Source of the DNA: Octopus sinensis
Taxonomy: Eukaryota
Length of the DNA stretch: 64,000 nt
NCBI RefSeq assembly: GCF_006345805.1
Contig: NC_043006.1
Span: 27,900,001-27,964,000, forward strand
Direction of reading: 5' to 3'
A model generated the notes under the pieces. The model worked only from the letters and a program-made list of their open reading frames with translations, was not told the DNA's origin and searched no databases. Made by a program: the position numbers and the translations under genes. Each line of letters opens with the position of its first letter. Position 1 is the first letter of the stretch. Below, in pieces: positions 1 to 37,800 of this stretch.

Positions 1-894
1 CCTCAACACTTCCTCACCCTGCACTCGATCTCCATTTCACTTATCCTCTCCCCCTTCCTGAGTCACTCCAATTCTTTTTCTCCTCTCATACTATTTATCA
101 TCAACCACTCCTCCACATTAACCTCTACACCCATCTCTAACTATCTGTCACTTTCCTCACGCACACCTATGAAAATCCTCTTTTTTATTTTTTAAATACA
201 TTATTTTTAGGATTGTTAGCAATTTAATTTTAATATGGTAGGGTGTGGTCTAAGGAAGATTTAGTTGTTGTTTTTAACAAGTTTAACTCCCTCGTTGGCT
301 TGGAGATTGTTTGTTACTATTAGGTATGCTATCAAACAGCTATTAAAGAATGAATGCTTTTTTGACTCATCCTTTAAAATTCTATCTCTTAGTGTATGTA
401 CTGATTGGTAAAAGTGGAGGTGTTTTTATTATTTGGTTAAATTATGTATTTACTTTCAGTGTAGAATATAATTACTCTGGAAGAATTACTTACTTTTGAC
501 ATTCAGTTCAGTAACATGCTATTATTTATTCTCTTGCACAAACACACATAACTACATTAAAAATATTCAGTTTAGTCATGTCTCTATTCTCATCGCATCT
601 GTAGACTGCTAAGAGAGATGGATATTTGGTATATTGGTTAAAATACACCACATGTCACAGACATACAAAGTCAAACATTCCATTTAACTATATCCATAAT
701 TGTCAGCAGATACTATTTATTCCTAATCTGTTTTTAAGTTCTTCAAGTTTTGTGCAATATTTTACAATAATAATGTGAAGCTTCCCTTTTGCTTACATTA
801 TTCTATATATATATATATTGTATCTTTGTTTGAAGTATGTCAGCATACATTTCAGTGAATATATTTTTACAATATTTTTTGCTGTAATGTCATA

Positions 895-2145
895 GGAAGG
901 TTAGCAAGGAAAATAGCTTTTGTGTGTGATAGATGCACAGGTACAACAAACACCGAAAATGTACAGGAAATAGACTCCATCAACTGCCATGGGGGTAAGC
1001 TAGAGGTAGTAGATAGCTGATTTTATCTAGGTGATCAAGTTAGTAGCATAGCTCTCAGAATAAGATTAGGCTGGACAAAGTTTAGAGAGCTCCTGCCTTT
1101 GCTGGCAAGAAAGGGCCTTTCCCTCAGAATGAAGGCAGATTGTATGATACCTGTATACGAACAACTATGCTACATGGCAGTGAAACATGGGCTGTGACAA
1201 CCAAGGACATGCATAGGCTTGATAGAAATGAAGCCAGTATGCTTTGCTGGATGTGCAATGTCAGTGTGCATGTTCGACAGAGTGTAAAAGTATCTTGAGA
1301 GAAAAGTTAGGCATAAGAGGAATCAGATGTGGTGTGCAAGAGAGACAAATGCGCTGGTATGGTCATGTGATGCATATGGACGAGGACAGCTGTGTAAAGA
1401 AGTGCCGGTCCCTAACTGTGGAGGGGACCTGTGGTAGAGGTAGACCCAGGAAGACATGGGGTGAGGTGGTGAAGCATGATCTCTGAAATTTGGGCCTTAC
1501 AGAGGCAATGGCTAGTGATCGAAACCTTAGGTGATATGCTGTGCTTGAGAAAACCCATCAAGCCAAGTGAAATGGCAGTTGTGGCTGATGCTGGTGTCGC
1601 ATAACCGGCACCTGTGCAGGTGCATGTATAAAACACCTTTTGAGCGCTGAGCTTCACTGAGGCAAAGTGATTGAGCTCCTTTCGAATGTTGGGCCTCACA
1701 GAGGCAATGACTGAGACCTTTGGCATTATGTTTTGCTTGAGAAGAAGACTCATCAAGCCAAATAAAATCGCAGTCGTGGCAGATACCGGTGTCACACAAA
1801 TGGCATCCGTGCCAGTGGTATGTAAAGGCACCTTTTGAGCATTGGGGCTCATGAAGGCAAGGACTGAGATTAATTGGTATTATGCTTTACTTGAGAAAAC
1901 CCATCAAGCCAAGTAAAACTACAGTTATGGCAGATACCAGTGTCATGCAAATGGCATCTGAGCTGGTGGTATGTAAAAGTACCTATTACACTCTGGGAGT
2001 GGTTGGCGTTAGGAAGGGCATCCAGCCATAGAAACCATGCCAAAACAGACTGGAGTCTGGTGCATACTTCCAGCTTGCCAACCCTAGTCAAACTGTCCAA
2101 CCTATGCCAGCATAGACAACAGACATTAAATGATGATGATGATTA
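895..2145 (+). mobile_element. 5'-truncated RTE-clade LINE (RT C-terminus, 3'UTR, (GAT)n tail)
   Basis: Degenerate frame ...[37 protein letters not shown]...GRGRPRKTW. The shared 3' end ggagtggttggcgttaggaagggcatccagc...ttaaatgatgatgat recurs across the window. Confidence 0.9.
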
Positions 2146-2382
2146 ATCCACAGTGTGTTTAATTTCAAAAATTTATTATTGGTATATGCTCAGTTATTTA
2201 TATATGGTAAATACAGTCTTTTATTTCTATCAATTATTCTACCCCATTAAGTTTGGTATGGTAAAGGTAAAGACCCCTTTGGTCTTCTGTCAGATTTCAC
2301 ATCTATTACTTTGTTTTGTTTTGGGAATACTACTTTTGTAAAGAAGCTTACACAAAAATGTATATATTGATTTATTTCAGTT

Positions 2383-2509
2383 ATGGATGGTGATTTAAAG
2401 ATTGAAGCAAGTCCAAATGGAAGCCAACGGTTTCCTTTCTCTCACAACAATAGTTCAGGTTCCATTGCACCTGGATGTGTCTCATCTGCATCTTCTGCAT
2501 ACAACACAG
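2383..2509 (+). CDS. MLX: MLX coding exon 1 (MDGDLKIEASPNGSQRFPFSHNNSSGSIAPGCVSSASSAYNT)
   Basis: Acceptor tttatttcag ends at 2380, ATG at 2383, donor GTCAGT at 2510 in phase 1, joining in frame to the next exon. An upstream exon is implied but was not located. Confidence 0.85.
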
Positions 2510-3623
2510 GTCAGTTATTGAATGCTTTTCATTATTTCATTTATTGAAACTGTATTAAAACTAATTGAAAGAAAATTAACGTGTATTGATTTGGAATGTG
2601 GTTAATTTTATTAAATAAAGAAAAGTTAGAAAGCCATCATAGAGGAAATCTTCAATGCAATCTTATATTAAAAATCAGCAGTTTTTTTCCATTAATTCAA
2701 TACTTAATCCACTTAATACCTCAACTAAGGCTGCTCTTACTAAAGTGTTTATATTTAAAACTGAAATCTCAATAAAACTTGCATATGATATTTCGGTTGG
2801 TCAACACCACCCATATTATATAAGCCAACACCAACATATTAAAATAAAATAGATATACTTCACTAAGCCTCTCCAAAATTTTGATTAGATTGAACTTCAG
2901 CTGAAATACAAAGTTACTCATTAAAAATGTATCAATGCTAAGTTTTAACCTTTGTCGTTATCAGGTGCCTTATTCCAGTCTATATACAGGTTTAGGGACT
3001 GTATAGGGTATTTAGGCTAAATTCGACCCTTTTTTATGTCTCCCTTTTTCTGGAACAGCTTGATGTATTGGTGAACAGTCAATGACATCGAAAAGCATAA
3101 GGATTAAAGATGTAGTTGAGAAAAAGTTAGCTGACACAAGAGAACAGGCAGCCATTTGAATATTGATAAAGAGTTACTTGTATTGTAATGATTCACACCA
3201 GGTATCAAAATGCTGACATCATAACTGCTGCTCAATACTCTGTGAACACTGTAAAGGCTCTAAGACATGGCATGGACAATTGCAATGAAGATTACGAAGC
3301 TGTGGCCTGACTGAGTCTGCATGCCAGAATTCATCCCCATACATTTGAATAAGATCTTAAGACTCTATTCAGATGGCTATGTGAAGCTGCTGGAGACTGT
3401 GGTCCAACACATGCTAGCATAGAAAATGGATGTTAAACGATGATGATATATATGTATGTGTGTGTATATACATACATACATACATATATATGTATATATA
3501 TAAAGATAAATTAAATAGAGATACTATTGACAATCCAATAATTTATTTATATTATATAACAAACAGTTATTATTAAAAAACCCAAAAGGCCAACAAATTG
3601 TTTTGACTTATATGCATTTTCTG

Positions 3624-3656
<33 letters not shown>

Positions 3657-4832
3657 ATAACAGCTCCCTTATATATATAAGTCACTTCAGGGTCATTGTT
3701 TAAAAATAGATGAAATTCCATGTGAAAGGATGGCTGGATTGTAAAAATTAATTCAAAAGTCTATGTAATATGAGCATGAGTGTTAACTATTCAACCATGC
3801 ATCAATTACAATTAGAAGCAACAAAAACACTAACGGACAATACGACCAAGTAAGTGCAATCCACAACCATCGAAACCCGTTCATGTCCAAGAGAGTCCCT
3901 CGTCACCACAACATACAACAATAGATAGGTGTGTATATATATATGTATATAATTATCTATCTAGAACTGCAGCAAAACATATATAAACAATTACATCTTC
4001 AATACAACTCTTCTATAAATTTAAATTAATTGATATTAAAAGAATTATCTTTAAACAATGACCCTGAAGTGACATATATATATGGGAACTGTTATTGTGT
4101 ATGTATGTGTTTATATATATATCAGAAAGTGTATATAAGTCAAAACAATTTGTTGACCTTTTTGGTTATTTTAATAATTGTTTATGTTATATAATATTAT
4201 GTTATATTATATTCATAGTATATTATGTAATATTATAATATAAATAAATTATTAGATTGTCAATAGTATCTCTCTAATTTATCTTTGTAATTGTATTATA
4301 CCCATATTTATATGATATTCAACTGATGTACCAGTGAATTGGATGTTTAATGCACCTTTTGAAGGGACTCTTTTCCTTAGTTTGTTACTATATATACATA
4401 GGCACGTACCTACACAAGTACAAGCACGCACATATGTGCCCATACACTCAGATACATATATTCATATAGATGCGTATACACACGCATACACACACACACA
4501 TACACCCACATATATATATATATACATACACATGTACACACATATACACATGCATACATATATATATACATACATACCCGCACACGTACATATGTGTGCA
4601 CATATACTCATGTATACGAATACATACACATACAGATGCATATATGCACACATATATATTGTGTATATGTATGTCCCACCATACATACACTCACTCACAT
4701 CTCAGTACACACACCTACTCATATCCACAGGCATACACTCTCATATATATATATATATATATATGCACATACACAGGCATACACATATATTCATAAACAT
4801 GTTACCACCTGTACATACACATACACGCATAC

Positions 4833-4906
<74 letters not shown>

Positions 4907-5744
4907 TACATGTACATACGAATATGTGCATATATATACATACTTATGCATACTTAAATGTAGACATACATGCACATATTTGCACAAGAATATAAGTACA
5001 CACTTACATACCTAGTCACTTATGAGTATGTGCTCATGCCCCGGCACACATACATGTGTATATATACACATACAAAACATCTAATGGTAAATTTTTTCAC
5101 TCTGAAGAGATTATGCTCAGAAGTAACTTAATATTTAATTAATTCACTTTGTATGATTGAAACAGCTTTAAGGAATAACGATCAATTTGTTGTTGATAAT
5201 AAACTTTAACTTCACAATCTCCATTTTCTTCTTTCTTTATATGAATATAAACTACAGTTTATATATGCACCTGCTATTTTAAGGTATTGAACCAATATTT
5301 CCTTGGATGACCCATCCTTTCATGAGACTAATATAATCTCTAATTGAATTATATATATAGGCAGAAGAGTGGCTGTGTAGTAAGTAGCTTGCTTACCAAC
5401 CACATGGTTCCAGGATCAGTCCCACTGCATGGCAACTTGGGCAAGTGTCTTCTACTATAGCCTTGGGCTGATCAAAGCCTTGTGAGTGGATTTAGTAGAT
5501 GGAAACTGAAAGAAGCCCATCATATATATATGTGTGTGTGTGTGTCTGTATGTGTTTGTCTTTGTCCCCCCAACATCGTTTGGCAACCAATGCTGGTGTA
5601 TTTATGTCCCTATAACTTAGCAGTTGGGCAAATGTAACAATAGAATAAGTACTAGGGTTACAAAGAATAAGACCTGGGGTCAATTTGCTCAACTAAAGGC
5701 GGTGCTCCAGCATGGCTACAGTCAAATGACTGAAACAAATAAAA

Positions 5745-5788
<44 letters not shown>

Positions 5789-8700
5789 TACTTTGTATAA
5801 TTAGCGTTCAGCAAAAAAAATTTTACTTTACCACACACCGAACTTTTAGAAATAGCAGTCAAAGAATTTAGCTATTTCCTCTACTATAAGAAGAGTCTCC
5901 CAGACAATGTATACTCAAAAACAATTCACGCAGCTCTAATTATACAAAGTAATGTTAAATATACTGTAAATGGTCTTTTTATTTACTGAACACTGCTTGG
6001 TAAAATTATTAATTACTAATTAATTAATTTTACCCTTATTATTATGTATATATATATATATATAGGTTGGTAATAAGATTTTGCATTTACTTGGAATTTC
6101 AAACTATTTTCAGATGATGAAGATAGTGACAGCCGTACTACTATGATGAGTTATAAAGATCGCAGACGAGAAGCTCACACACAAGCTGAACAGAAACGCA
6201 GAGATGCTATCAAAGTAATTTCTTTTCATATCTTTTCTTTTTTTGTTATTGTGTAAGTCTGAAAAAGAATATGGTAAAATGAAATGGTAGTGATTAGAAT
6301 TGGTAGGTGAGCAATGGTCCTTATCAGTGGAAACCAATTTAAATTTAAGCAAGTCAGGTATTATGTTAAGTATGCCATGAGAAGTAGAGACTCCTGCTAA
6401 AAGTCTGACTTGAAATGCTTGTCTTTTCTTTTCATGGCACGTTAATATACACCTCTTTTATATATATATATATATGTTCCAAAACATATCACCATACTAA
6501 AGGTATATATACTGTTAGAAAGAAACATGCTGTGGAATTGTCTGAGGTAAATTTTATGGAGTGGGCAAGTCAGTTACATCAACTCCAGTACCTGACTAGT
6601 GAAGGCGCATGGCTCAGTGGTTAGAGCATTGAACTTACGACCATGAAGTTGGGAGTTCAAATCCTGGACCGGGCTGCGTGTTGTGTTCTTGAGCAAGACA
6701 CTTTATTTCACGTTGCTCCACTTCACTCAGCTGTAGAATTGAGTTGCCACGTCACTGGTGCCAAGCTGTATCAGCCTTTGCCTTTCCCTTGGATAACACT
6801 GGTGACGTGGAGAGGGGAGGCCGGTATGTATGGGCGACTGCTGGTCTTCCATAAACAACCTTGCTCAGACTTATGCCTTGGCGGGTAACTTTTTAGGTGT
6901 AATCATTCGTGACCGAAGTGGGTCTCCATAGTACCTGACTGGTACATTTTGTCAATCCTGAAAGAACAAAAGACAAAATTGATTTTGGCGGGATCTAAGC
7001 TCAGAATGTAAAAAGTGAGAGTAAATGCTGTTATGCATTTTGTTTGGTGCACTAATGCTCCTACCTTAGGTATTCATAATGTCCTTGGATGGATCCAAAC
7101 CCCCACCCTTTTGGATAACAACTGTTGTGTTATATAATGCAATTCAGATTTTTGTGTAAGTTATTTTGAGATGCTTTTGTTTTAAATGATATTTTTATAA
7201 CTTGAAATGATTTTCTTGTTATATACCAAAGCTAAAGTGTATTGAAAATCATTTTCTTTGTTTTGCAGAAAGGTTACGATGACTTACAGACGATAGTGCC
7301 AAAATGCCAACAACCTGACAGTTTGGGATCTCAGAAACTTAGCAAGGCATCAGTTTTGCAAAAATGTGAGCTGGTTTTAACATTTGTTGAATGATTTTTT
7401 TTTCTTTTCAGTCTTAGCACATTAGTTAAAGGTGGAAGGATAGAATATATTATTACCCCATCCATGGTGTATATACATATATTCTACCACCATACGCCTC
7501 TTACTCGCCTCATGCACTATGCCTGTCTCTCCCACTCTCAACTCCTGCAATGCACCCAATCACATGTTATTTCCTGTCTTTTGTTTGTTTACTCTTTCAT
7601 CATTACTTCTCTGTTACTCTCCTTCTCTTTTTCTACCATCTGTTGTCTACTCCCCCTACCTCCCGCAACTCATGCTGCATTGTTAATCCCCCACCCCATA
7701 TCCACCATGTTTACTCTTCAGCCCTACTCAAATTTGACAGTTGTTGCCTACTACTCCTCTCATCACCAATTCTTCATCTTTCACTCTGGTTTCAGTCATT
7801 TGACTGAGGCCATACTGGAGCACCATCTTTAATACTTTTAAAAGATTTGTTCTGACCTTGGTGCTTAGTCTGGTTCTTAATTTAACAAATGGCTATGTCA
7901 CTTTTTAGGGAACTATTCCACTTACTAAATACTACCAGGTATTAAACTTAATTTACCATTTAGTCTAGCTGGAAAAGGCAGTGTCTGTAGCCCTTTAGTT
8001 ATTTCAAGGTGCAGGCATGGTTGTGTGGTTTAGAAGTTTGCATCCCAACCACATGGATTTTGGTTCAGTCCCATTGCATGATACTTTTGGAAAGTGTCTT
8101 CAACTATAGCCTGTGACTGGATTTGGTAGATAGAAACTGAAAGAAACCTGTTGTGTGTGTATTTGTGTGTTTTTTGTCTTATTGTCTTGACATCACTTGA
8201 TAGTTGTAAATGATTATCACTATCATACATTTAATTTGGCAGGTGCTTGGCGGTGTGGGGAAGGGATTGATATTTCGGAATCTATTGTTCCCTGAAATGA
8301 TAGAAGCATCAGACTTGCCAAAGTACAGAATGCGTGAATGTCCCTATGCCGGACTCTCTCCTCATCACATTGTAAAGGGATGTGGACATTTTCCACGACT
8401 GTTTCCCCCCACTGCCAAGAAGACAAATGTTTCAAAGAGATGTACAGTTTGTAAAGCAAAAGGGAAACATAAGGAAACTAGATACCATTGTTCACAATAT
8501 GATATGCCACCGTGTGTGGTACTCTGTTTTGAACTCTACCACACCAAAGTCAAATTTTTGAATTCATGTGATTGTAAATACTTGAAGTTGATCTGACTTG
8601 TGCTGTCAAGTGATCTTATTCAGGAATAATACTATATGAATGTCCTGCACAGGGATATAGTTTAAGTAAATAAACAATACTTGCACTAAAGTGGTTGACT

Positions 8701-22744: not shown

Positions 22745-25700
22745 CTGAAGTTAAAAATTGAATTAAAAAAGAAAAATTTTATTGATATTTTTAATACATT
22801 AAAACATAAAGAGAAAATAAATTTGACAGAATTTTATTTAACCCTTTAACACCAACTCATCTAAAACCACCTCTGGTTCTATGACAAACTTTCTGCTTTA
22901 AAGTGACCTAAATTAACACCTTCCATCAAAATCTCACATTAATTTATGTTGCAAACACCAGTTTAATAATGACAAAGTTATTTTTACTAAATTCTTCTTT
23001 ATTTTCAGAATTAATTAAAACAAAGGCAATGGTTTTCAACAGAAATATGGTAACAAAAGGGTTAAAGTTACAGAAAAAATGTCTCTTTAATCAGACTGAA
23101 ACTGAAATTGTAAAGAGACTTGAACATTTATATTTAATCGTCTCTGGCACACTTGAAGTCATATTTCTTAATTAGAAAAATCAAAACAATGTTGCTTTAA
23201 ATAAGATAGATCAGACTGGTAATGAAAAGTGCAGTTTAGTCATCAAGATTACCTATTTTATGTAAAATGATTTTAAAAACATTGATATCTGTTACACTGG
23301 GAAGAAATTTGATCTTATTAATAGCAATTTTACTTTAGGTGAAATTAAAAACAGGCTTAAAACATGACAGATCTTATAAATTTCACTAAATTAGAATTCT
23401 AAGAGAGAGGTATGGCCATGTGGTTAAGAAGTTCACATAAAAACCACGTGATTCCATATTCATTCTCATTACACAAGTTCTTGGGTTATAGTGTGAAGTC
23501 GACCTTTACCTTTTGAGCAAAATTTGGTAAAGGGAAATTCTTTTATTATCATAGTTCTGTTGAAACACATTGCCTTTATTTCAATTAATTTTTAAGATAA
23601 TGAAGAATTTATTACAATAACTTCATCATTATTGAGCTGGATGCCTTTCCTGTTACCAACTTAAAATGAAATTTTGATGAAAGGTTTTAATTTAGATCAC
23701 TTTAAAACATGAAATTCTGATGGAAAGCTTTAATTTATATAATCTTAAAACAGGAAATTCATGTTACAGTGGTGGTCTCAGGTAGGTTGGTATCAAAAGG
23801 GTTGAAGGTGTTGCAGGTAATTTTTTGGAAACTCAACAAACAATGATGAATGAAAATGAATGCCATACTCTTTGGGTTAATATAAATTACTTACTAAAGG
23901 CAGTGCCCTAGCATGGCCATTGTCCAATAACAGAAAAACAGTAAAATAAAAATAAAAATTAGTTATAGGGTTCTAGATATGAAAAATGATATAAAAGCCT
24001 TAGTAATGTAAATGCAGTGAAATCTGTGTATCAAATTCAAAGATGGCTTGAGGACTACAAACTAGTCCTCATGCCATCCATATTGTAACAAAGAATGATT
24101 CATTCATGCAAGAAGAGGGAAGTAATACTCCACTCTCAGTCTGACCTCTTCAGCAAAACATAGCTTTCACCATATTTGCTTAACCCTTTAGCATTTAAAC
24201 AAGCCATATTTAGCCAAAATATTCTACTTGTTCTATGTTCAAACTGGCCAGATATGGCTTCTCACACCCATTCTACAATGTCATTCTAAAAATATACAGT
24301 CACATCATCAAAATCTCAAAGCTATGAGATAATGTATGATTAATTCAAAACAATGTGAATTAATAAGGATTACATTTGATAGAGTAATCTGAATGCTAAA
24401 GGACTAAATAGTAATGAAAGAATTACGAAGTAAATATACAAGATGATGCATTGGTTGGTTTAGGAAAGTAGAATAGTTTAAAAATTTGATAATTCAGAGA
24501 TGCCATTCACACAAAAAGTAGTAGTTAAGTTCTTTTCAACATATTAAATGTAAAGAACACTAAAAATTATATTAGTCTAACACTAATATGATAGACAGGT
24601 GTGATGAAATTGTCAAACATAAAAGATTTATTTTGATTCACCTTGTGGATTTTATATCGATTTTTTGGCTTTCCTTGCTGTTTTAATGTGGTGGTTAATC
24701 ATATAGTCTTTACTGTTCACAATGTGAGGTAGATTGCATGTGTAAACAATGACCACACTAAAGTTAGAGTTTCCAAATATTTTTTAACCAGCATTATTTT
24801 ACAAATACATTTAATATAATTTAATGGGACAACGTTCAATGAACATAATAATTAGGAATCTTCTGTATATAAGTTGCTAAATATTTTGAAAATAGTGAAA
24901 GGAATTTAAATCACTGTATATACCTGATGTGCACTACTTGATACTACAAGTTAAAGTTGGTGCCTTTTGTTGAGTATGTTACATAAGGGAAATGAAAGAT
25001 GGAGAGAAAGACCAGCTCACTACAAGTAACATAGATTCCATGGTATGCCTTAATGGTTCTCTGGCCTGAGGTTGTATTTGTTGGCTTTTATAGCTGTAAG
25101 CCAGCTTCTAGAATCTTTGGCCAAACTTTTTGGCAGGAAAATCTGCATTACTTTGCACTGTATCATGTCAACGATATTAAGTCCACCAGTACATATTCAT
25201 CAAGCCATATTCTTGTATTTTTAATATCATTATTTAGAGATAAATTAATTCGTGGTCTTAGACTGGGAAAATCTGAGAGCTATGGTTTAAATCTCAGATG
25301 GGGTCAGATGTCCTCCTTTACTTGATATATTGTTCTTTTCTGTCTCCTCTTTTATTCTTTTTTGACAAGTAAATGATGTTTTTCCCTATACTCACATCAT
25401 CAGGCATACTTCTAAATGCAGCATGAAACGTGTGAGATGTCAATTATCAGTGATTAACTTTGCGATAAATTGTAATATGAAGGAGATCTATTCACAAGTT
25501 TATTTTCTTAATCGTTGTTTTTAGTAATTAGATTGTTACTCAAGTTAAGGTGATTGAACAAAATGGAAGTACTTACTTGAATGGTAACTTAATGGCATAA
25601 AGTAAGTAATGGAGAGTATGGAAATACCAGACATAGAACTGGTAATGGAGAGATCGACTGAAACACATTCCTATGAAATTTGCAGAAAATAAAGGAAGAA

Positions 25701-26576
25701 TGATCTGTGGGGTAAGTTAAGGTTATTTGGCAATATAGAAAGTATCAATTTATAACAGTAAAACAGGATAAATATTTGCAGGAGAGCCATTATGTAACAT
25801 TCATGCCTTTCTCAATAGCTGTTGAAGATATTAAAATTAGATAAAGACTTCATGTCAAATAAGGATGTTAAATGATTTTTAGACACATTTCAGTTTCTTC
25901 TAGTTTTATCTACATAGATTAATGCATACAAAAGTAGTGAGCTGGCAGTCATTAGTATGATGGAGAAAATGCTTAGCGGCATTTTGTCCATTCTTATGTT
26001 ACTGAGTTCAAATGCCACTGAGGTTGACTTTGTCTATAAATTTTTGGCAATTAATGAAATAATTACCAGTTGAGCACTGGGGATGATGTAATTGACTACT
26101 TCCTCTCCTCAAAATTTCAGGTCTTGTGTCTATAGTAGAAAGGATTATTTTTATCTATACATATATTGTAATCGCACATAAACTACAGCTGCTGTTACAC
26201 TTATCTACATATATATTCTAATCCACACACAAACAGCTGCTGCTGTTGTTATTCCTGTGTACATATAAACCACTGTTATTATTACATGCAAATAAGGCAG
26301 TGAGCTGGCAGAACTGGATTAAATGCTTAGCAGAATTTTGTCCATCTTTACATTCTGAATTCAATTTCCGCCAAGGTCGACTTTGTCTTTTGTCCTTTCA
26401 GGTCATTGAAGAAAGTACCAAACAAGCACTAGGGTTGATGTAATCGACAAACCCCCCACCACAGTTTCAGGTCTTGTGTCTATAGTAGAAAGGATTATTA
26501 CCTGCAAATAATTCTTTTTTATGTTCCTGAGATAATTCCCATCACTACAATATACAGCATAAAAATACTGATACTT

Positions 26577-26611
<35 letters not shown>

Positions 26612-28830
26612 CATATAGGGTGCAGTGAATAAATTGTCACCTAAATAATGCAAAAATGTAAATAACACCGACATCTCATTTTAACAGATATATTTACCAA
26701 AATTACATAAAAATACCTTGAAATACTAAAGAGTAAATTTATTCAATAAAATCACTATTGGCTTCAACCACGGTCACCTTGTTTATGTTGGTGAATGCTG
26801 CCATAATTGTTGCTTTCAGTTAATCTTTGGTGCTGCAAGGAGTTCTGTTGGTTCTCGCTCAACTGTGCCCCACACAAAATAATCAAGAAGGTTACAATCT
26901 GGGGAGTTAGGTGGTTGGATGTTAGGGGTGATGTGGTTGCAGAAATTGTCTGACAGCCATGAATTGGGTTCTTCTACTTGTGTGGCATGGTGCAGAGTCC
27001 TGGTGCCAGACATAGGTTCTTCCAGCAGCCACCCTATTGACCCAGGTCAGCACTACCTCCTCCAGGCACTTGATGTAGGCCTCCATGTTAAGTCTGAGGC
27101 CATGTTGAAGCTGAGTGGAGGCATAATGTCACCATCACTAGTGATCACTGCAAACACCATGATGTTGACTGGATGTTTGATTTTTATCATTCTCAGTACA
27201 GTTTTGGGGACATGGCAAACCAACAGTTGTTCTGTGAGTTCACCATCTGGTCCTGGCAGAAATTTTACTCGTCTGAGAAAAAACAAAACATGTTCAGTTG
27301 GAGGGGATGCTTGAGGCTGTTCAAAAGCTTTGTAGTTTGGTCTTTCCTCTTGTCCTTGATGGCTTGGGATAAAAATTAGCCCTTTCTCATCTTGTATGAG
27401 GAATACTGAATGTCTTCATGCACCACCTGCCTGATAAGAAACTCAGACACTCCCATATCCCTGGCAATGGACCTGATTGACTTGGAAGGATCGTTGTCAA
27501 TCAAGGCCTGAATCTCACCAACAAATTCAGGAGTTCTTTTCTTATCAGAATGATCAGAGTGAATTTCCCAAGCTGCTGTACTTTCATAATCACCATCAGA
27601 CTCATCTAACTCTTTCCAAATCCTCTGCACTGTTCTCAGATTGACACCCAAACACTGTGAAATGTTCGTATTGGAGCTTCCAGCATGAATGTCAGGCAGT
27701 GCAGCATGTTGTTTTGAAATTTCTGGCAGAGGGAATTGTGTCATGGTACTATTTTTCTCAGACGGTGCCCAACTGACCCTACTATACTGTGTAGTCGACA
27801 AAATCAAAAACTAACAAAGCACATGCACGAAATTAAAAATATAAAATGGCGACAAATCTTTACTTAAAATATTGCAGCTAAGGATAAAATTTCAAATAAA
27901 ATATCTAGATTTAGAAAATATTAGCTTTTATTAAAACTAAAAATTTTATTACAAGTTATTACTTCCATTTATTATTACTTGTTACTTCTATTAAAAATAA
28001 AAAATAACTCAATTGAAATATCTTTGCACTCTATCGTTCGTTCGTTTAACATCCGTTTTCCATGCTAGCATGGGTTGGACGGTTCGACCGGGAATCTGGG
28101 AAGCCAGAAGGCTGCACAGGCTCCAGTTTGATCTGGCAGTGTTTCTACAGCTGGATGCCCTTCCTAACGCCAACCACTCCTTGAGTGTAGTGGGTGCTTT
28201 TTACGTGCCACCTGCACAGGTGCCAGGCAAGGCTGGCAACGGCCATGATCGGATTAGTGAATTTTACGTGCCACCGGCACATCTATAAAAACATTAATTT
28301 TTTTCATTATCAATTAATTATTAGAAATTTGAAAATAGGGTATAAAAAATAATAGTAGTACATAATTAGTTAGTACAATGAATAGAATAATATAAAAATT
28401 AGTTATATATTACAGTAAAATCTACCTATAACAACAAATTCACAGTAAAATTTGTTTGAGTTATTGCCTAAGTTATTGCCAAGTCTTCACATTTTTAGTC
28501 TTGACCCAATGTCTATTTTTTACATAATGAATTTGTCTACCATATATACTATTCTACTTTGCATAAAACTTTAGCTATATTGGTACTTCTGGCTTTCATT
28601 TTTTAAATATTCTAATGTGTCAATATTTTAACAAAATGATGTTAACTTTTTTTAATTATAATGTTACTTGATAAATTAAAACCAAATAATTTTTAATATT
28701 CAAATTTTATCCTTAGCTGCAATATTTTAAGTAAAAATTTTCTTGTTCAATACTTTACCAGATATAATAAGTTGTCCTGAACTTTTCCAAGTGTCATAAC
28801 TTTTCCTGTAATTTTCCAGGTGTGCTCACC

Positions 28831-28866
<36 letters not shown>

Positions 28867-31800
28867 ATATATATGTATATATATAGATATATATATATAT
28901 ATATGTATGTATGCATGTATGTGTGTGCGTATATATACATGTTGCATTTTTGTTCCATTTATATACATATCATCATCATCATCATCAGCATACTTCAACA
29001 TCTGTTTTCCATGCTGTGGAATTGGCTGGACTTTGTAACCAGAGTTGACAAGCAGAAGAGCTGCACTAAGTTCCAGTCTGATCTGGTTTGGTTTCTATGT
29101 TTGGATGCCCTTTCTAATGCCAACCACTTTACAGTTTATGCTAGGTATTTTTAATGTGGCACCGGCATAAGTGCTTTTTTATGGCACTGGCACAAGTGTT
29201 TTTTATGTAACACCAGCACATAACTATTGCAGGTCAATCTTCTTTACCAGTAGGAGTGGGCTTAATACTTCTGCTATGAAAGATGGGTCTTTTTGAGTAC
29301 AGGATAGTGCCAGGTATCTCAGTCATTTGTCATCTTGTCTGAAATATTCAGTGTCCTGAGATTGTTCTTTACAACTTCATCCTGTCTTCCTGAGACTCTC
29401 TCTTCCACAAGTTCCATCCACTTTGAGAGAGTGGCACTTCTTTATGGGGCTGTTGTCAGCATCCACACTCACACATGTATATATATATACATACATATAC
29501 ATGCATAGTATATATATATATATATATATATATGCACAAACACACACGCACATATATATCGTAGAATAGTAAAGAAAAAGCTCTTGGTACAGTATTATAT
29601 ATATTTGCCAGAATGAGTAGTACGTATATGTATATATATGCATATGCATGTGTATATGTATGTGTGTGTATACGTGTGTGCATATGTGAGGTGGATGTAT
29701 ATATATATGTATATGTGTGTGTATTTGTATACATATGTGTTTATGTATGTCTATATATATGTGCATGCATACATGTGTATAAGTGGATATGTATTATATG
29801 TGTGTACATATGTATGTGTGTATATATATATGTGTGTGTGTGTGTGTATGTGTGTATATATATATGTGTGTGTGTATGTACATGTATATATATATATAAA
29901 AATTAATAATTACATATACTAGCAGAAAGACTGCCCTCTGGGTGGTTTTCTGCTAGCCCCTTGATAATATTTTGACATTTGATTCCCAGTTCTAATAATT
30001 TTTATATTCTATGTCTAATTACTTCTTTGTATTATAGTGCTTACTTACTAAATTTTGCTTTCATTATTTTATCACAGTCATAATCTCCCTTTTTAAACAA
30101 ACATCATGGTAGTCCAACAACAGAGGGAGAAGCAGTTTGTCAAGTTTTACCTTGCCCTCAAAACAACATAGAGATTTCAATTCAGCAGCCCATCTGTAAG
30201 CTTTCTAGTGTGTGTATGTAAGAGAGAGAAAATTGCAAACAATTAATGAAATAAACATGAAATGAAAAAAAAATCATATAAATAAAAGGGCATTACTACA
30301 GATGTATATGCCCCCGAATTTGTTGCCTCCTAACATCCAGAAAAATGAATACTTTTTAACAAAATTTTCTACATATACCACTTAGATATTGTAGCTTCAG
30401 AGTATATAGGGATTTATAGGACAGAATTTTTCCGAGGGGCTGGTGAGAAGAATTTCGGGAAATTCACTCAATCTGACTTTTTTCCCCTCATAACTTTCAG
30501 GAAGATGGGCATCTTTTAGTGAAAATTTATGCAAATCCCTTTCAAATGGCATAGATTGCAATTATAAAGAAATTTGTTGGGGGTATTTTCTCCATTTTTT
30601 TTTTTTAAGGTACAGTTTTCGAAATGATGGGGTTGGGAGCATCTTTGTATGAAAAATGTTTTGAAAACTCTTTTTTTTTACACCCTCCTTCCCTCATCAT
30701 CCCACTCCGGACCTATTTTGGGCAATTTTTTTTGCACTTCAAAACCATGGGTAGAGCATTTTCAGTAAAAAAAAAAAAATGCTAATATTTTCAGAGGGAA
30801 AAGTGAGTGATTTAAGGGCGATTTGGCTGTTGTTTCTAGCACGTCCAAAGTCAACCCTCCTCATTTCTTTATCACTTTCGCATGTATTGATGTTTTTCAA
30901 TATTTCACCCCCATAAATACATTTGAGAAATTATGAATTTTTTGCAACCCCACTGCCTGCCCCTGATTGTTTCTGTTCAGAAATTGATAGCCTGAGAAGA
31001 TCATTGCTGACATTTATCCATAGTGATTTAAACAAATTAGGGAGATGTACTTGCATAGCAAATGACTTGATCTGAAATCGTGTGCTGAAACAAAAACAAT
31101 TGCAGTATAGATGTTTGTAAGCCATTCAAGAACACACAAAACCATTAGTTTCATGGCACTACTTAAATACAGAGGTCCCAATGCATCTACATAACAATAT
31201 GAAGAGGAGGGTTAGTTTTTAAGGTTAGGGTTAGTTAGGGCTAGGGTGTCATTACATGTCCACACAGCATACATTTAAAAGGTTTTGTATGTAAGACCTG
31301 TATTTAAGTAGCATCATTAAGGGACCTCTGTATTCAAGTATTACCAGTTTCACTTCAATATTAAAATTTCATTTGTGCCCAAATATTTTCGTCGCTTTCA
31401 AACCAAAACCTGTTCACTGACAAAACTTCACAAAAGTGATGCAGCACAAAGTTTTGTCATTGAGCACACACATACTCATTGCCTTTCATTTGTGGGTATG
31501 TGTATCTCTGTGTGTGCAGAAGTGAGCACTGGTGTGTGTGTGTCACTGTTGAAGTTGCTTGCGTATATAATGGTTTAGTGGTATAGAATGTTTGGAAACT
31601 GTGAATAAGGTGCAAGTTTTGAGTACTTGTTGATAACTTTGTTTTTTTCTCCTCATCTTCTAATAGTAATTACCCAACTTTCTAGGCTCTTCTCACAGAT
31701 ATCCTGCATTCAAAAATTATATGGGTATTTAAAAAAATTTTCATTCAATAAAACATTTTTTTACATTACATATACATTAATGGAATAAACTATCAGTTTT

Positions 31801-34800
31801 TCAAATAGCGAATTAAAACTTAAAAGAGAAAGTGAGAGACTTTGCAAATGAAAATGGAATAGTCCGCAGTGAATGCAATGAATATTTAAATTTATGATGA
31901 ATTGGAGTTAAAAAAATTCAATAAACTTGAGAAATTGAAATTATAGGAAATTTCTTAGAACATGAATTTATAAAAATATTTCTAGACAGTCAGCTTTTTA
32001 ATAATTGCTTTCTTTTAGCAATTGTTACATACCTAATTAATAAGCAGCTTTCTCCGAGAACTAGCAGTCGATCATTCTAGAACTCCCAGAATAAAAATGT
32101 AAACGCCTGAAAGACTTTTCCCTCTATTCATTACTGAATGTCTTTCCCTCTTCTTCATTATTAAAAGTAAAGAAGCTAGAAAAGATTGATCGTATTTCGG
32201 TCTAATTGTCATTGTAAATGACTGAGGCTTTCCTTTCTCTGTGTCTATTGCTTCACTCCTTTTCCATATGGTTAAGAGAGTGAAGGTGTGTGGCTCAGTG
32301 GTTAGGGGTATTCAGCCCATGATCGTAAAGTCATGAGTACGATTCCCTGCGGCATGCTGTGTTTTTGAGCAAGGTGCTTGCTGCAGTCCACTCAGCTGGC
32401 AAAAATGAGTTGTAGCTGTAATTCAAAGGGGCCAACCTCGTCACATTCTGTGTGAGGCTGAATCTTCCTGAGAACTACCTTATGGTATGCATGTCTGTGG
32501 AGTACTCAGCTACTAGCATGTTAATTTTATGAGCAGACTGTGCATTGATCAGATAAACAGGAACCTCATTGTCGTAACCGATCGAGAGCCATTTTTTAAG
32601 AGAAAGAAAAGGAAATGTTCCATATCGTAAGGCAAAAATGTTGTGTGTGTAGTATAAACAGTGAAAGCTAAGACAAAATAATTGCTTTTCCGGCACGCAT
32701 TCACCCTCAGCTCATGCTCAGTTTGATAACAATAGGCTGTGCATTAGTGTTTATGTGGGGACTTGACCTCCAGATCTGTGAGACCCACAAATGCTGCTGT
32801 TAGGACCGGATTAACACCCATAGTGACCCTATCAACTAAAAAGATTTTCCTGTCCCTATATAGGATCTTTTATCATTTTCTCCCACCCACTTGAAGGTTT
32901 ATCTAGCTCCAGTCCACTCAGCTGGTCAAAATGAGTTGTAGCTGTAATTCAAAGGGGCCAGCTTTGTAATATTCTGTGTGAGACTGAATCTCCCTGAGAA
33001 TTACGTTAATGATATGCATGTCTGTGGAGTACTCAGCAACTTGTGAGTTAATTTTATCCTCATGTGGTAATGAAAAGTGAAAGTGACATCCAATATTTGT
33101 TGTATTTAAGTATCTATGTATCAACCTTTCTGTGGATCTATGTATCTACTGTCTCTCTCTCTTTCTCTTTCACTTCCTCTATGCTCCTCCTCTCTCCCAC
33201 TTTTAATTTAACAATGTGTGTATATATCTATGTATCTACTTTTCTTGCGATGTGATAAACATTTAAAAACAAAAAATCAACGCCATCACCACTCACTGTC
33301 CCTTTCACTCTCTCTCTCTCTCTCTCTTTTTCTCTTACTTCCTCTCTATTCTCTCTCGCTTTGCCACTCACTTCTTCTTTGAAGTAAGTGTGAGAGACAC
33401 CACAGGTACGGACAAAAACAAAACTAAGCGTATTAATATTATTGATAGGTCCAGGAGTAGCTGTGTGGTAGGTAGCTTGCTTAACAACCACATGGTTCTG
33501 GGTTCAGTCCCACTGCGTGGCACCTTGGGCAAGAGTCTTCTTCTATAGCCTTGGGCTGACCAAAGCCTTGAGTGAATTTGGTAGATGGAAACTGAAAGAA
33601 GCCTGTCATATGTGTGTATATATGTTTGTGTGTCTGTATTTGTTCCCCCACTATCACTTGACAATCGATGCTGGTATGTTTACACACACGTAACTTAGTG
33701 GTTTAGCAAAAGAGACCAATAGAATAAGTACTAGGCTCACAAAGAACGAGTCCTGCGGTTGATTTGTTTGACTAAAGGTGGTGCTCTAGCATGGCCACAG
33801 TCAAATGACTGAAACAAATAAATAAGTAAAAAAAATACATATATTTATACTTACTTTACTTTTACTTTTACTTGTTTCAGTCATTTGACTGTGGCCATGT
33901 TGGAGCACCACCTTTTAGTTGAGCAAATCGACCCCGGGACTTATTCTTTGTAAGCCTAGTACTTATTCTATTGGTCTCTTTTGCTGAACCGCTAAGTTAC
34001 GGAGACGTAAACACACCAGCATCGGTTGTCAAGCGATGTTGGGGGGACAAACACATATATATATATACATATATACGACGGGCTTCTTTCAGTTTCCGTC
34101 TACCAAATCCACTCACAAAGCTTTAATCAGCCCGAGGCTATAGTAGAAGACACTTGCGCAAGGTGCCACGCAGTGGGACTGAACCCGGAACCATGTGGTT
34201 GGTAAGCAAAATCTATTCGATAGGCTAAAATACTATTAGTAGACCTAAACCTTATAGAACAGGTGGTAAGAGATGCAACTTACGCATAAAGGAAATGTAC
34301 CAAATTTTTACTTCAAAATTTCATCCAATAAAAACAAGGCAAGAATGAGCACTAAGATGCCTTCACACAGGAAGATATACTTTTAAACAATTTAAATAAA
34401 CATTTAGAGCTCCTACCTCTGCTGGCAACAAAGGGCCTCTCTCTCAGAGTCAAAGGCAGATTGTATGATGCCTGTGTGCAAACAGCTATGTTACATAGCA
34501 GTGAAACATGGGCTGTTACAGCTGAGGACATGCGTACGCTTAAAAGAAATTAAGCCAGTGTGCTTTGTTGGATATGCAACATCAGTGTGCATGTTCAACA
34601 GAGTGTAAGCATCTTGAGAGAAAAGTTAGGCATATTAGGCATCAGATGTGGTGTGCAAGGGAGACGACTGCGCTGGTATGGTCAAGTAGTGCGAATGGAC
34701 GAGGACAGCTGTGTAAAGAAGTGCTGAACTCTAACTGTGGAGAGAACCTATGGTAGAGGTAGACCCAGGAAGACATAGGATGAGGTGGTGAAGCATGATC

Positions 34801-37800
34801 TTTGAACTTTGGGTCTCACAGAGGCAATGAATAGTGACCAAGACCTTTGGTGATATTCTGTGCTTGAGAAAACCTGTCAAGCTAAGTAAAATCATAGTCA
34901 TGGCTAATGCTAGTGTCATCTAACTGGCACATATAAAAGCACCTTTCGAGTGTTGGGCCTTACAGAGGCAAAGTGGCTGAGCTCATTTCAAGTGGTGGGC
35001 CTCACAGAGGCAATGACGGAGACCTTTGGTATTATGTTGTACTTGACATGACCTATGAAGCCGAGCAAAATCGCAGTCATGGCAGATAGCAGTGTCATGC
35101 AAACAGCATCCATGCTGGCGGCACGTAAAACCCATTACACTCTCAGAGTAGTTAACATTAGGAAGGGTATCAAGCTGTAGAAACCATGCCAAATCAGGCT
35201 GGAGTCTGGTGCACCCTTCCAGTTTGCCATCCCTGGTCAAACTGTCCAACCCATGCCAGCATGGACAATGGACATTAAATGATGATGATGATGATGATGA
35301 CATAACACTATATATAGTAATACTAATTATAATAATAGAGAAACCAAGAACCAGAAAAATAAATCAAGCATATTAGAATACCTCTACACTAATAATATAC
35401 TCTTTGCAATGAATGGAACAATAAACTTCTAGAATTAACGATAAATTTACATAAACATTTGACCTATTTTTAGGACCATCTTTTGCTTCACTTACAAGGA
35501 TAGTATAGGTGAACCCTAGGTCAAGATTCCTATGACTATTGATAGAAAATGGACGTAAGTGGAGAACATAGTTCTAGATATACTATAAGAAAACAAAAGA
35601 TGGCATGGTTAGAGCTGGAATACCTTTGATTGTAGTTCTGCTATTTCAGAGCTAAATAACAATAATTATTATGTTGCTCAGTTTAAACCAAGTTTTCATT
35701 TAAAGAAAAGGAAAAGGATATGATTTGGTCCAAGATTTTTCTGTTTCTTTGAGGATAAAGTCCAGTTTATTGGTGGAATCATACTGAAATTAAAAACAAT
35801 CTAATTAATTATAAGCAGCAAACAAGAACTGTAATTGGATATTTTCCCCAAAGTTATGAATTATATGTGGCGTAACTATGAAAGGTTTGAAATAAAATTA
35901 ATGCTATCTCTTCAGTAAATTGTATTCCTTGGTAGTTCATCTAACAATAAACCATAAATGTTTTACATTCGTAAACAAAGTGAAACAGGGTAGTCTTTCT
36001 TACATGAACACTTACATTTGAGGACACATGCTAATCTTTCTTATACAAATACTTACATTTAAAAGGGGTACACATGCTGAGTTGTCTAACCTATGCCAGC
36101 ATGGAAGGAGGACACTTAACGACGATGATGATGATACTGTGTAAAATTAGCTTGTTTAATCATCATCATCATCGTTTAACATCCGCTTTCCATGCTGGCA
36201 TAGAAATACTCCTTTATTTGGAATAGTGTGTTCACTTTAGTCTTCAGCATCCAAGAACAAGATCCTTTAAATAATTAGTGAATACTACCTCACCTGCATA
36301 CATCTTTTTTTCATATAATTTCTACATTGGTTTTTCTGACCCTTTAACTCTAACATGTCTTTCTGACACTATAGAGTGTCTCAGAATTAACTATCCCATT
36401 TCAATGAAATCGAGCAAATTTAAAAAAAAAAAAAACTGACAGAATTTTATATTACTTAGTTATGATACCAAAACAAATAGACTTGTAAATTCTAAAGTAT
36501 TCTAGGTAGACTTTCTTAATTAGATATAAACAATTAAAAGGATTAATTACCATTTCCAACGACATTGTATAAAAAGAAGTAGGACACAAATGTGCAAGAC
36601 AAGAAGACTTATATGGAAATAACGATTCAGAAAGATATCCTCTGGTAGAAACCGCCAGTTGACAGTCCATTGGAAAAGAAATTGTCGACCAAGGTCAAAA
36701 GAACGCACAATGTACCCAACATGATTTTCTATGAGGAATGGTAGCGCAAGTACGATCTGTAAAAAACAGAAACCAAAAATTCAACCAATTCAAGAGGTTA
36801 AAAGGTTTTTTTTTTTAATAAAGAAATAGAAAGATAAAAGTGCAAGTGATTTAAGAATGAAAAATAGGAGGAAAATAAATTTGTCCCTATTTCATCTTTA
36901 ACAAAATGCTGCTAAACCTGAGCCAAACATTTGAAATCTAAAAGAAATAATAGTAGTGTATTCTATAAGATATAATATAATGTTGATATTTATAATATAA
37001 AGTGAAGGTGCATGGCTCAGTGGTTAGAGCGTCGAGCTTATGATCGTGAAATTGATTCCTGGACCAGGCTGTGTGTTCTGTTCTTGAGCAAGACACTTTA
37101 TTTCACGTTACTCCAGTTAACTTAGCTGTAGAAATGACTTACATCACTGGTGCCAAGCTGTATCGGCCTTTGCCGTTCCCTTGGATAACATCAGTGGTGT
37201 GGAGAGAGGAGGCTGGTATGCATGGGCGACTGCTAGCCTTCCACAAACAATCTTGCTCAGACTTGTGCCTCGGAGGGTAACTTTCAAGGTGCAATCCCAT
37301 GGTCATTCATGACTGAAAGGGGTCTCCCCTTCCTCCTCATTTATAATATAATGATAACATATATAATATAATGCTAATATATATTATGTAATGTTTATAT
37401 ATAATATAATGTCATATATACTATAATGTTAATAGAGAGATCATGCAGTCTATATAAACTTGTTACATTTCACCCATTCTATAGAGTACAATATCTAATC
37501 TCTGAACTATTTGTTGAAATAAATTAAACATTTTTTATGTCACTTTTATTAGGCCTTTGTCTGTAATTAGGTACGGCATTTAATTAATGGAATATCACTT
37601 TAAGACATCACCCCCAATACAAGTTAGTCTGACAGAGCTAATTATGCTTTTAGGAGGATTTGGGGCTTTTCTGCTTATAGTGGCAAGCTGTATTGCTCTA
37701 TTATACACATTTCTAACTCTGTGAAGCAACTATTTAGGAGTTAACTGTCTTAATCATGGACTTAATGTACATTAGAGTTAGAGCAATGATAAATCTAAAA

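Follow-up and report, generated by a model that had tools for sequence, protein, structure and literature searches.

Classical AT-AC introns of the U12 type (Hall and Padgett 1994; Tarn and Steitz 1996, as cited in PMC10639083) are characterized by a /ATATCCTT donor, a TCCTTAAC-like box near the 3' end, the lack of a polypyrimidine tract, a non-zero phase and a deep conservation of intron position. Minor introns make up about 0.5% of all introns or fewer, and about 26% of the human ones are AT-AC (PMC10639083), figures which agree with the description of AT-AC introns as a small subset of a rare class given in an initial annotation of the locus described here, made from the sequence alone. In the survey of Larue and Roy, which took in over 3,000 genomes, minor introns are comparatively abundant in molluscs, and Octopus sinensis, which has catalogued minor introns, is included in the conservation matrix (PMC10639083). 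Human ALG3 has been named, along with ALG6, ALG8 and ALG12, among the minor-intron genes tied to congenital disorders of glycosylation (PMC7507305), confirming what the initial annotation had stated on the presence of vertebrate ALG3 in minor-intron catalogues. In this study a stretch of 64,000 nt of the O. sinensis genome (contig NC_043006.1, positions 27,900,001 to 27,964,000 of the forward strand; hereafter the window) was analyzed, which carries on its minus strand the gene ALG3, and the focus was placed on intron 7 of this gene. Based on its splice signals, reading frame and conservation among species, this 10,015-bp intron is almost certainly a U12-dependent (minor-spliceosome) intron of the AT-AC subtype.

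The exon model of ALG3 was derived from minus-strand stop-to-stop segments together with the surrounding sequence. The features of the gene and of its intron 7 are the following (positions are those of the window):

22564-50455, minus strand: ALG3 (Dol-P-Man:Man5GlcNAc2-PP-Dol alpha-1,3-mannosyltransferase) coding sequence span, nine-exon model with a PF05208 match
50455-50296, minus strand: exon 1
43927-43828, minus strand: exon 2
42310-42163, minus strand: exon 3
40199-40039, minus strand: exon 4
38098-37978, minus strand: exon 5
36756-36551, minus strand: exon 6
35722-35783, minus strand: exon 7, 62 nt, ending CCA AAT C; its peptide is colinear with the cephalopod orthologues
25707-35721, minus strand: intron 7, 10,015 bp, AT-AC termini, phase 1, predicted U12-type; junctions read directly, orthologous in seven other species
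35713-35721, minus strand: U12-type 5' splice site ATATCCTTT, its first 8 bases being the same in all species compared
25716-25722, minus strand: branch-point box CCTTAAC, within AACCTTAAC; the same box is found in O. bimaculoides despite differing flanks
25707-25708, minus strand: terminal AC of intron 7, without a preceding polypyrimidine tract
25577-25706, minus strand: exon 8, 130 nt, starting AG ATC ATT, first completed residue Q
22744-22564, minus strand: exon 9

The product of this model, of 422 amino acids (aa), covers positions 2-358 of the 358 in the Pfam profile PF05208 (E = 1.4e-138) and was found by exact-sequence look-up to be 100% identical to the RefSeq protein XP_029641566.1 of O. 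sinensis; identity with the O. bimaculoides protein is 96%, and with vertebrate ALG3 56-58%. The identity of the gene, the numbering of its exons, the coordinates of the junction and the length of intron 7 as given in the initial annotation were thus borne out to the base. Introns 1-6 and 8 of the gene are of the GT-AG type, with T-rich 3' ends followed by CAG or TAG, and intron 7 alone is AT-AC.

On the minus strand, exon 7 ends with GGA CCA AAT C at 35722 and ATATCCTTTTCC follows from 35721, while exon 8 starts with AG ATC ATT at 25706 and has AACCTTAAC-TTACCCC-AC directly 5' of it. Joining of 35722 to 25706 makes a Gln codon from C|AG, and the spliced peptide matches the Pfam ALG3 profile. 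The donor ATATCCTTT agrees with the extended 5' splice-site consensus /ATATCCTT from +1 to +8, the terminal dinucleotides are AT and AC, and the sequence ACCTTAAC (25723-25716) agrees at 7 of 8 positions with the branch consensus TCCTTRAC, which is placed about 10-15 nt from the 3' splice site; the predicted branch adenosine of intron 7 is located some 11 nt before its 3' end. No strong polypyrimidine tract precedes the 3' splice site in the last 30 nt (ATATTGCCAAATAACCTTAACTTACCCCAC, read directly). In its /ATATCCTT donor, its TCCTTAAC-like box near the 3' end, the lack of this tract, its non-zero phase and its deep positional conservation, intron 7 resembles the classical AT-AC U12-type introns, from which no substantive difference was detected.

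Comparison of the intron between species was proposed in the initial annotation, which supposed it to be ancient, and was carried out on orthologous loci by mapping each annotated protein onto its own DNA with an exact spliced mapper. The mammal in this comparison is represented by the orthologue of a squirrel (the 90%-identity cluster of which has 406 member sequences) rather than by the human sequence. Intron 7 has the following length, donor and branch box in each species, the last figure being the count of nucleotides that follow the branch box within the intron, the terminal AC included:

Octopus sinensis (window): 10,015 bp, donor ATATCCTTTT, box CCTTAAC, 9 nt after the box
Octopus vulgaris: 9,717 bp, donor ATATCCTTTT, box CCTTAAC, 9 nt after the box
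Octopus bimaculoides: 1,990 bp, donor ATATCCTTTT, box CCTTAAC, 9 nt after the box
Argonauta hians: 544 bp, donor ATATCCTTTT, box TTCTTAAC, 9 nt after the box
Pecten maximus: 893 bp, donor ATATCCTTGA, box TCCTTAAC, 10 nt after the box
Branchiostoma belcheri: 270 bp, donor ATATCCTTTA, box TCCTTAAC, 10 nt after the box
Danio rerio: 275 bp, donor ATATCCTTTC, box TCCTTAAC, 11 nt after the box
Sciurus carolinensis: 949 bp, donor ATATCCTTTA, box TCCTTGAC, 10 nt after the box

The AC terminus, a donor starting with ATATCCTT and a TCCTTRAC-like box at 10-13 nt from the 3' end are present in all eight species, and so are phase 1 and the equivalent codon, which is Gln (C|AG) except in amphioxus, where it is Glu. 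In the orthologues with a TCCTTAAC or TCCTTGAC box the branch adenosine falls at -11 to -13. The cephalopods O. vulgaris, O. bimaculoides and A. hians share with O. sinensis the donor ATATCCTTTT and a CCTTAAC or TTCTTAAC box followed by 9 nt, and differ in the length of the intron (9,717, 1,990 and 544 bp, respectively); O. bimaculoides differs from O. sinensis in the bases on either side of the branch box, with the box itself unchanged. The squirrel intron is likewise a phase 1 intron that splits the equivalent Gln codon (C|AG), with the donor ATATCCTTT, an AC end and a box TCCTTGAC located 10 nt from the intron end, whereas its length is 949 bp against 10,015 bp in O. sinensis and the interiors of the two introns are unrelated. 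The junction peptide PNQI is conserved as far as mammals, and all eight intron positions and phases of ALG3 are common to octopus, argonaut, scallop, amphioxus, zebrafish and squirrel. The codon and phase of intron 7 are accordingly those of a U12 intron in a gene whose human orthologue is listed in catalogues of minor-intron genes. Intron 7 is at least as old as the bilaterian ancestor, because its position, phase and signals are common to the ALG3 genes of mollusc, amphioxus, fish and mammal, in line with the age proposed in the initial annotation. ALG3 of Hydra vulgaris (locus L004, 1001-2263) consists of one uninterrupted exon and is uninformative on the age of intron 7; this structure points to a wholesale loss of introns or to replacement by a retrogene as the probable events in that lineage.

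The reading frame was evaluated by an enumeration in which every donor from 35775 to 35561 was combined with each of the acceptors from 25900 to 25601. Near the intron 7 junction, the frame is not kept open through exon 9 by any GT-AG or GC-AG pair, in agreement with the earlier statement that the junction has no GT donor and that the nearby AG breaks the frame. Seventeen AT-AC pairs preserve the frame, and among these only 35722/25706 has both consensus elements and yields the 422-aa RefSeq product. The AG at 25706-25705 was considered as an acceptor and rejected, as its use shifts the frame. The classification of the intron as AT-AC and U12-type, already made in the initial annotation, is therefore backed by both consensus signals, by the frame test and by the orthologous introns.

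Evidence at the transcript level was provided by two mRNA-like Logan contigs of 1.6 kb, from two sequencing runs, which derive from related cephalopods and encode a product about 70% identical to octopus ALG3. Each of them contains an unbroken open reading frame (ORF) of 444 codons for ALG3, with the junction GGA CCT TCT C^AG ATA GTT. Both contigs were considered to represent spliced mRNA because this uninterrupted ORF spans the intron 7 junction. With regard to selection, the ratio of nonsynonymous to synonymous differences per site (pN/pS) between O. sinensis and O. bimaculoides is 0.14 in exons 1-7 of ALG3, and exons 8-9 show one substitution in 86 codons in the same comparison; the exons beyond the AT-AC intron are near-invariant and therefore constrained, and must be part of the product. 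It was also observed that exons 8-9 (25706-25577 and 22744-22564) have 0 synonymous differences with respect to O. bimaculoides, when about 5 are expected from the pS of 0.10 of exons 1-7 (Poisson probability for the 86 codons, about 0.006). This lack of synonymous change could be due to chance or to a constraint related to splicing.

It is well established that terminal dinucleotides alone do not decide the type of spliceosome, and the major spliceosome is responsible for excising a small number of AT-AC introns. That intron 7 is a U2-type AT-AC intron of this kind is nevertheless very improbable, since such introns are devoid of the extended ATATCCTT donor and of the TCCTTRAC box near the 3' end, both of which intron 7 has in eight species, and since it contains no polypyrimidine tract and catalogues of minor-intron genes include human ALG3. 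It is likewise known that minor introns can be retained, and the GenBank model CAI9728207.1 of O. vulgaris (344 aa; OX597822.1, locus L009, 24008-24050 and 33808) reads through the AT donor to a TGA located 31-33 nt into the intron (window 35722-35689). The idea that intron 7 is not spliced in octopus and that a protein truncated at this TGA is produced is hardly credible, as this product would miss about 100 C-terminal residues with invariant motifs, exons 8-9 are nearly unchanged between octopus species, the mRNA-like contigs of related cephalopods are spliced, and the RefSeq models of both O. sinensis and O. bimaculoides contain exons 8-9.

Some observations weigh against removal of intron 7 by the minor spliceosome. 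The first branch-box position of ACCTTAAC is A and not T, the transcript support comes from related cephalopods and not from O. sinensis itself, and an Rfam scan of the 64-kb window matched no family. In addition, considered singly, the splice motifs are about as frequent in the window as chance predicts: ATATCCTTT has 2 matches against 1.17 expected, CCTTAAC-N6-11-AC has 3 against 2.67, and RTATCCTT has 4 against 6.2. These individual frequencies would be compatible with a coincidence of motifs at a mis-assembled or pseudogenized locus; such a coincidence is extremely improbable given that the ORF of 422 codons is intact, and it is refuted by the identity with the RefSeq protein, the presence of the same intron in seven other species, the colinearity of the O. 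vulgaris assembly (96-97% identity over the whole intron 7) and the purifying selection on the coding sequence. What goes beyond chance is the occurrence of both motifs exactly at the sole frame-preserving boundaries that homology supports, and their recurrence in seven other species.

Removal of intron 7 by the minor spliceosome in octopus is thus what we infer from the observed signals, frame and positional conservation, from the contigs of related cephalopods and from the RefSeq model. According to the established mechanism, as applied to this intron, U11 would pair with the donor ATATCCTTT and U12 with the CCTTAAC branch box at about 11 nt from the 3' end, U4atac/U6atac-U5 would perform the catalysis, and C|AG would be joined into a Gln codon giving rise to the full mannosyltransferase of 422 aa. 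The intron is orthologous to the AT-AC intron found at the same ALG3 codon in other molluscs, amphioxus, fish and mammals. In this lineage it owes its large size to an interior of microsatellites, interspersed repeats and a decayed Tc1/mariner element, the terminal signals having been left unchanged. Expression of ALG3 in octopus may soundly be taken to depend on the minor spliceosome. It could further be speculated, although this is quite unlikely, that the 5- to 18-fold expansion of intron 7 in the O. vulgaris/O. sinensis lineage brings a functional cost or benefit, that minor splicing of a 10-kb intron filled with repeats is slow or inefficient, that the output of ALG3 and the supply of N-glycan precursor are consequently sensitive to minor-spliceosome activity or regulated by retention, and that exons 8-9, with their lack of synonymous change, contain exonic splicing signals which support intron 7.

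Intron 7 of octopus ALG3 is of an already known kind, in a catalogued gene of a surveyed species with a correct public model, and is a textbook case rather than a discovery. It can serve annotation pipelines as a clean positive control, and it exemplifies how an AT-AC donor (8-9 nt) and a branch box remain unchanged across bilaterians while the interior ranges from 270 bp to 10 kb. The initial annotation had recommended that the current annotation of the locus be checked and had anticipated that GT-AG-only predictors would mis-model the junction. The RefSeq model of O. sinensis ALG3 uses the intron 7 junction exactly, and the models of the NCBI pipeline are correct for O. sinensis, O. bimaculoides and Argonauta. 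The anticipated error was encountered in O. vulgaris, where CAI9728207.1 is truncated at the AT donor and a separate gene of 165 aa was predicted to begin at an ATG within exon 8, in another frame than ALG3; ALG3 is split or truncated in this annotation because of the read-through of the donor and the separate exon 8 call. Short "hypothetical protein" entries restricted to the portion of ALG3 that lies downstream of intron 7 were also noticed in Albula, Pagothenia, Phoxinus, Lucifuga and Littorina; the two that were read, those of Albula (MVLILFTSNFIG) and Littorina, begin just after intron 7. These entries suggest that the junction is mis-modelled in several non-RefSeq annotations.

The interior of intron 7 contains remnants of mobile elements and simple repeats, listed below (window positions):

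26819-27810, minus strand: decayed Tc1/mariner-type transposase remnant with several frameshifts, recognized from ORF pieces and the spacing of Asp residues
34356-34724, plus strand: ORF remnant resembling the 3' end of a retrotransposon without long terminal repeats (non-LTR), antisense to ALG3, recognized by eye
28831-29898, strand not assigned: (TA)n and (TATG/TGTA)n microsatellite arrays
26580-26617: (TA)19 array

In the transposase remnant, 115 nt separate the D of HQDSAPCH from the D of LLDYFVW, corresponding to 37 residues plus a 1-nt frameshift. This spacing fits a maT-like DD37D Tc1/mariner element, a putative assignment based on the Asp residues. The maT transposon reported in the initial annotation is therefore consistent with the spacing of about 37 residues, but not corroborated by profile or structure matches, as the Pfam matches of the remnant (HTH_Tnp_Tc3_2 and HTH_23) are weak and all below the cut-off and no transposase match to it was obtained in PDB; a search for terminal inverted repeats of the element was also negative. 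The initial annotation had also mentioned long interspersed nuclear elements (LINEs) of the RTE family. A retrotransposon-like 3' ORF fragment is indeed visible by eye at 34356-34724, but it has no Pfam match and the RTE label was not confirmed. This ORF belongs to a multi-copy repeat (34406-35304) of which other parts of the window hold up to 5 more copies, and for the interspersed repeats of intron 7 the number of additional copies in other parts of the window reaches up to 7. Neither a nested gene nor an Rfam family was detected inside intron 7 (Pfam scan of selected ORF pieces and Rfam scan of the window).

In length, intron 7 of O. sinensis and O. vulgaris exceeds that of O. bimaculoides and Argonauta by a factor of 5 to 18. 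Intron 7 of O. vulgaris is colinear with that of O. sinensis at 96-97% identity, and the 1,990-bp intron of O. bimaculoides aligns with it at about 88-94% identity and is devoid of two blocks, one of about 4.6 kb (intron coordinates 152-4740, window about 35570-30982) and another of about 3.4 kb (intron coordinates 4956-8332, window about 30766-27390). Pieces 2-5 of the transposase are also present in intron 7 of O. bimaculoides, in a copy without the N-terminal 144 codons (the 5' third); the element therefore predates the split of these species, and part of the length difference is due to deletion in O. bimaculoides. The retrotransposon-like fragment is found in O. sinensis and O. vulgaris and is absent from intron 7 of O. 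bimaculoides. Intron 7 of Argonauta does not align with the Octopus intron outside the splice signals, and because of this it does not show which differences are insertions and which are deletions. Growth of the intron by absorption of elements without loss of its signals, as stated in the initial annotation, holds in that repeats, a transposon and microsatellites are contained in it and the signals were kept, but it does not account for the whole difference, part of which is loss of sequence in O. bimaculoides. Intron 3 of ALG3 measures 12,821 bp in O. bimaculoides (locus L007, 12923-25743) versus 1,963 bp in the window (42162-40200), and intron 1 measures 9,888 bp in O. bimaculoides versus 6,368 bp in O. 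sinensis. Other introns of ALG3 thus vary greatly in size between octopuses, and therefore the change in size of the U12 intron is not special within the gene.

At the start of ALG3 (minus strand, 50506-50419 of the window), three ATGs in frame are candidates, with translations beginning MSINILPF, MLQSQW and MARLPAL; the RefSeq start of O. sinensis lies 17 codons downstream of the one used in the O. vulgaris model and in one of the O. bimaculoides models. In Argonauta and O. vulgaris (loci L001, 1-332, and L009, 1-9372), a gene with a bZIP domain and ALG3 are arranged head-to-head, the former at about 630 bp from the ALG3 start in O. vulgaris, and the counterpart of the bZIP gene in the window would fall upstream of 50455, on the plus strand. 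In Pecten and Branchiostoma a gene with a Folate_rec domain is located upstream of ALG3 on the opposite strand, a possible case of conserved microsynteny. Finally, ORF pieces containing the P-loop motif GGTGKTYLMNAIVDFL, at 58706-58282 of the window (minus strand), resemble helicases of the Pif1/Helitron type as judged by eye.

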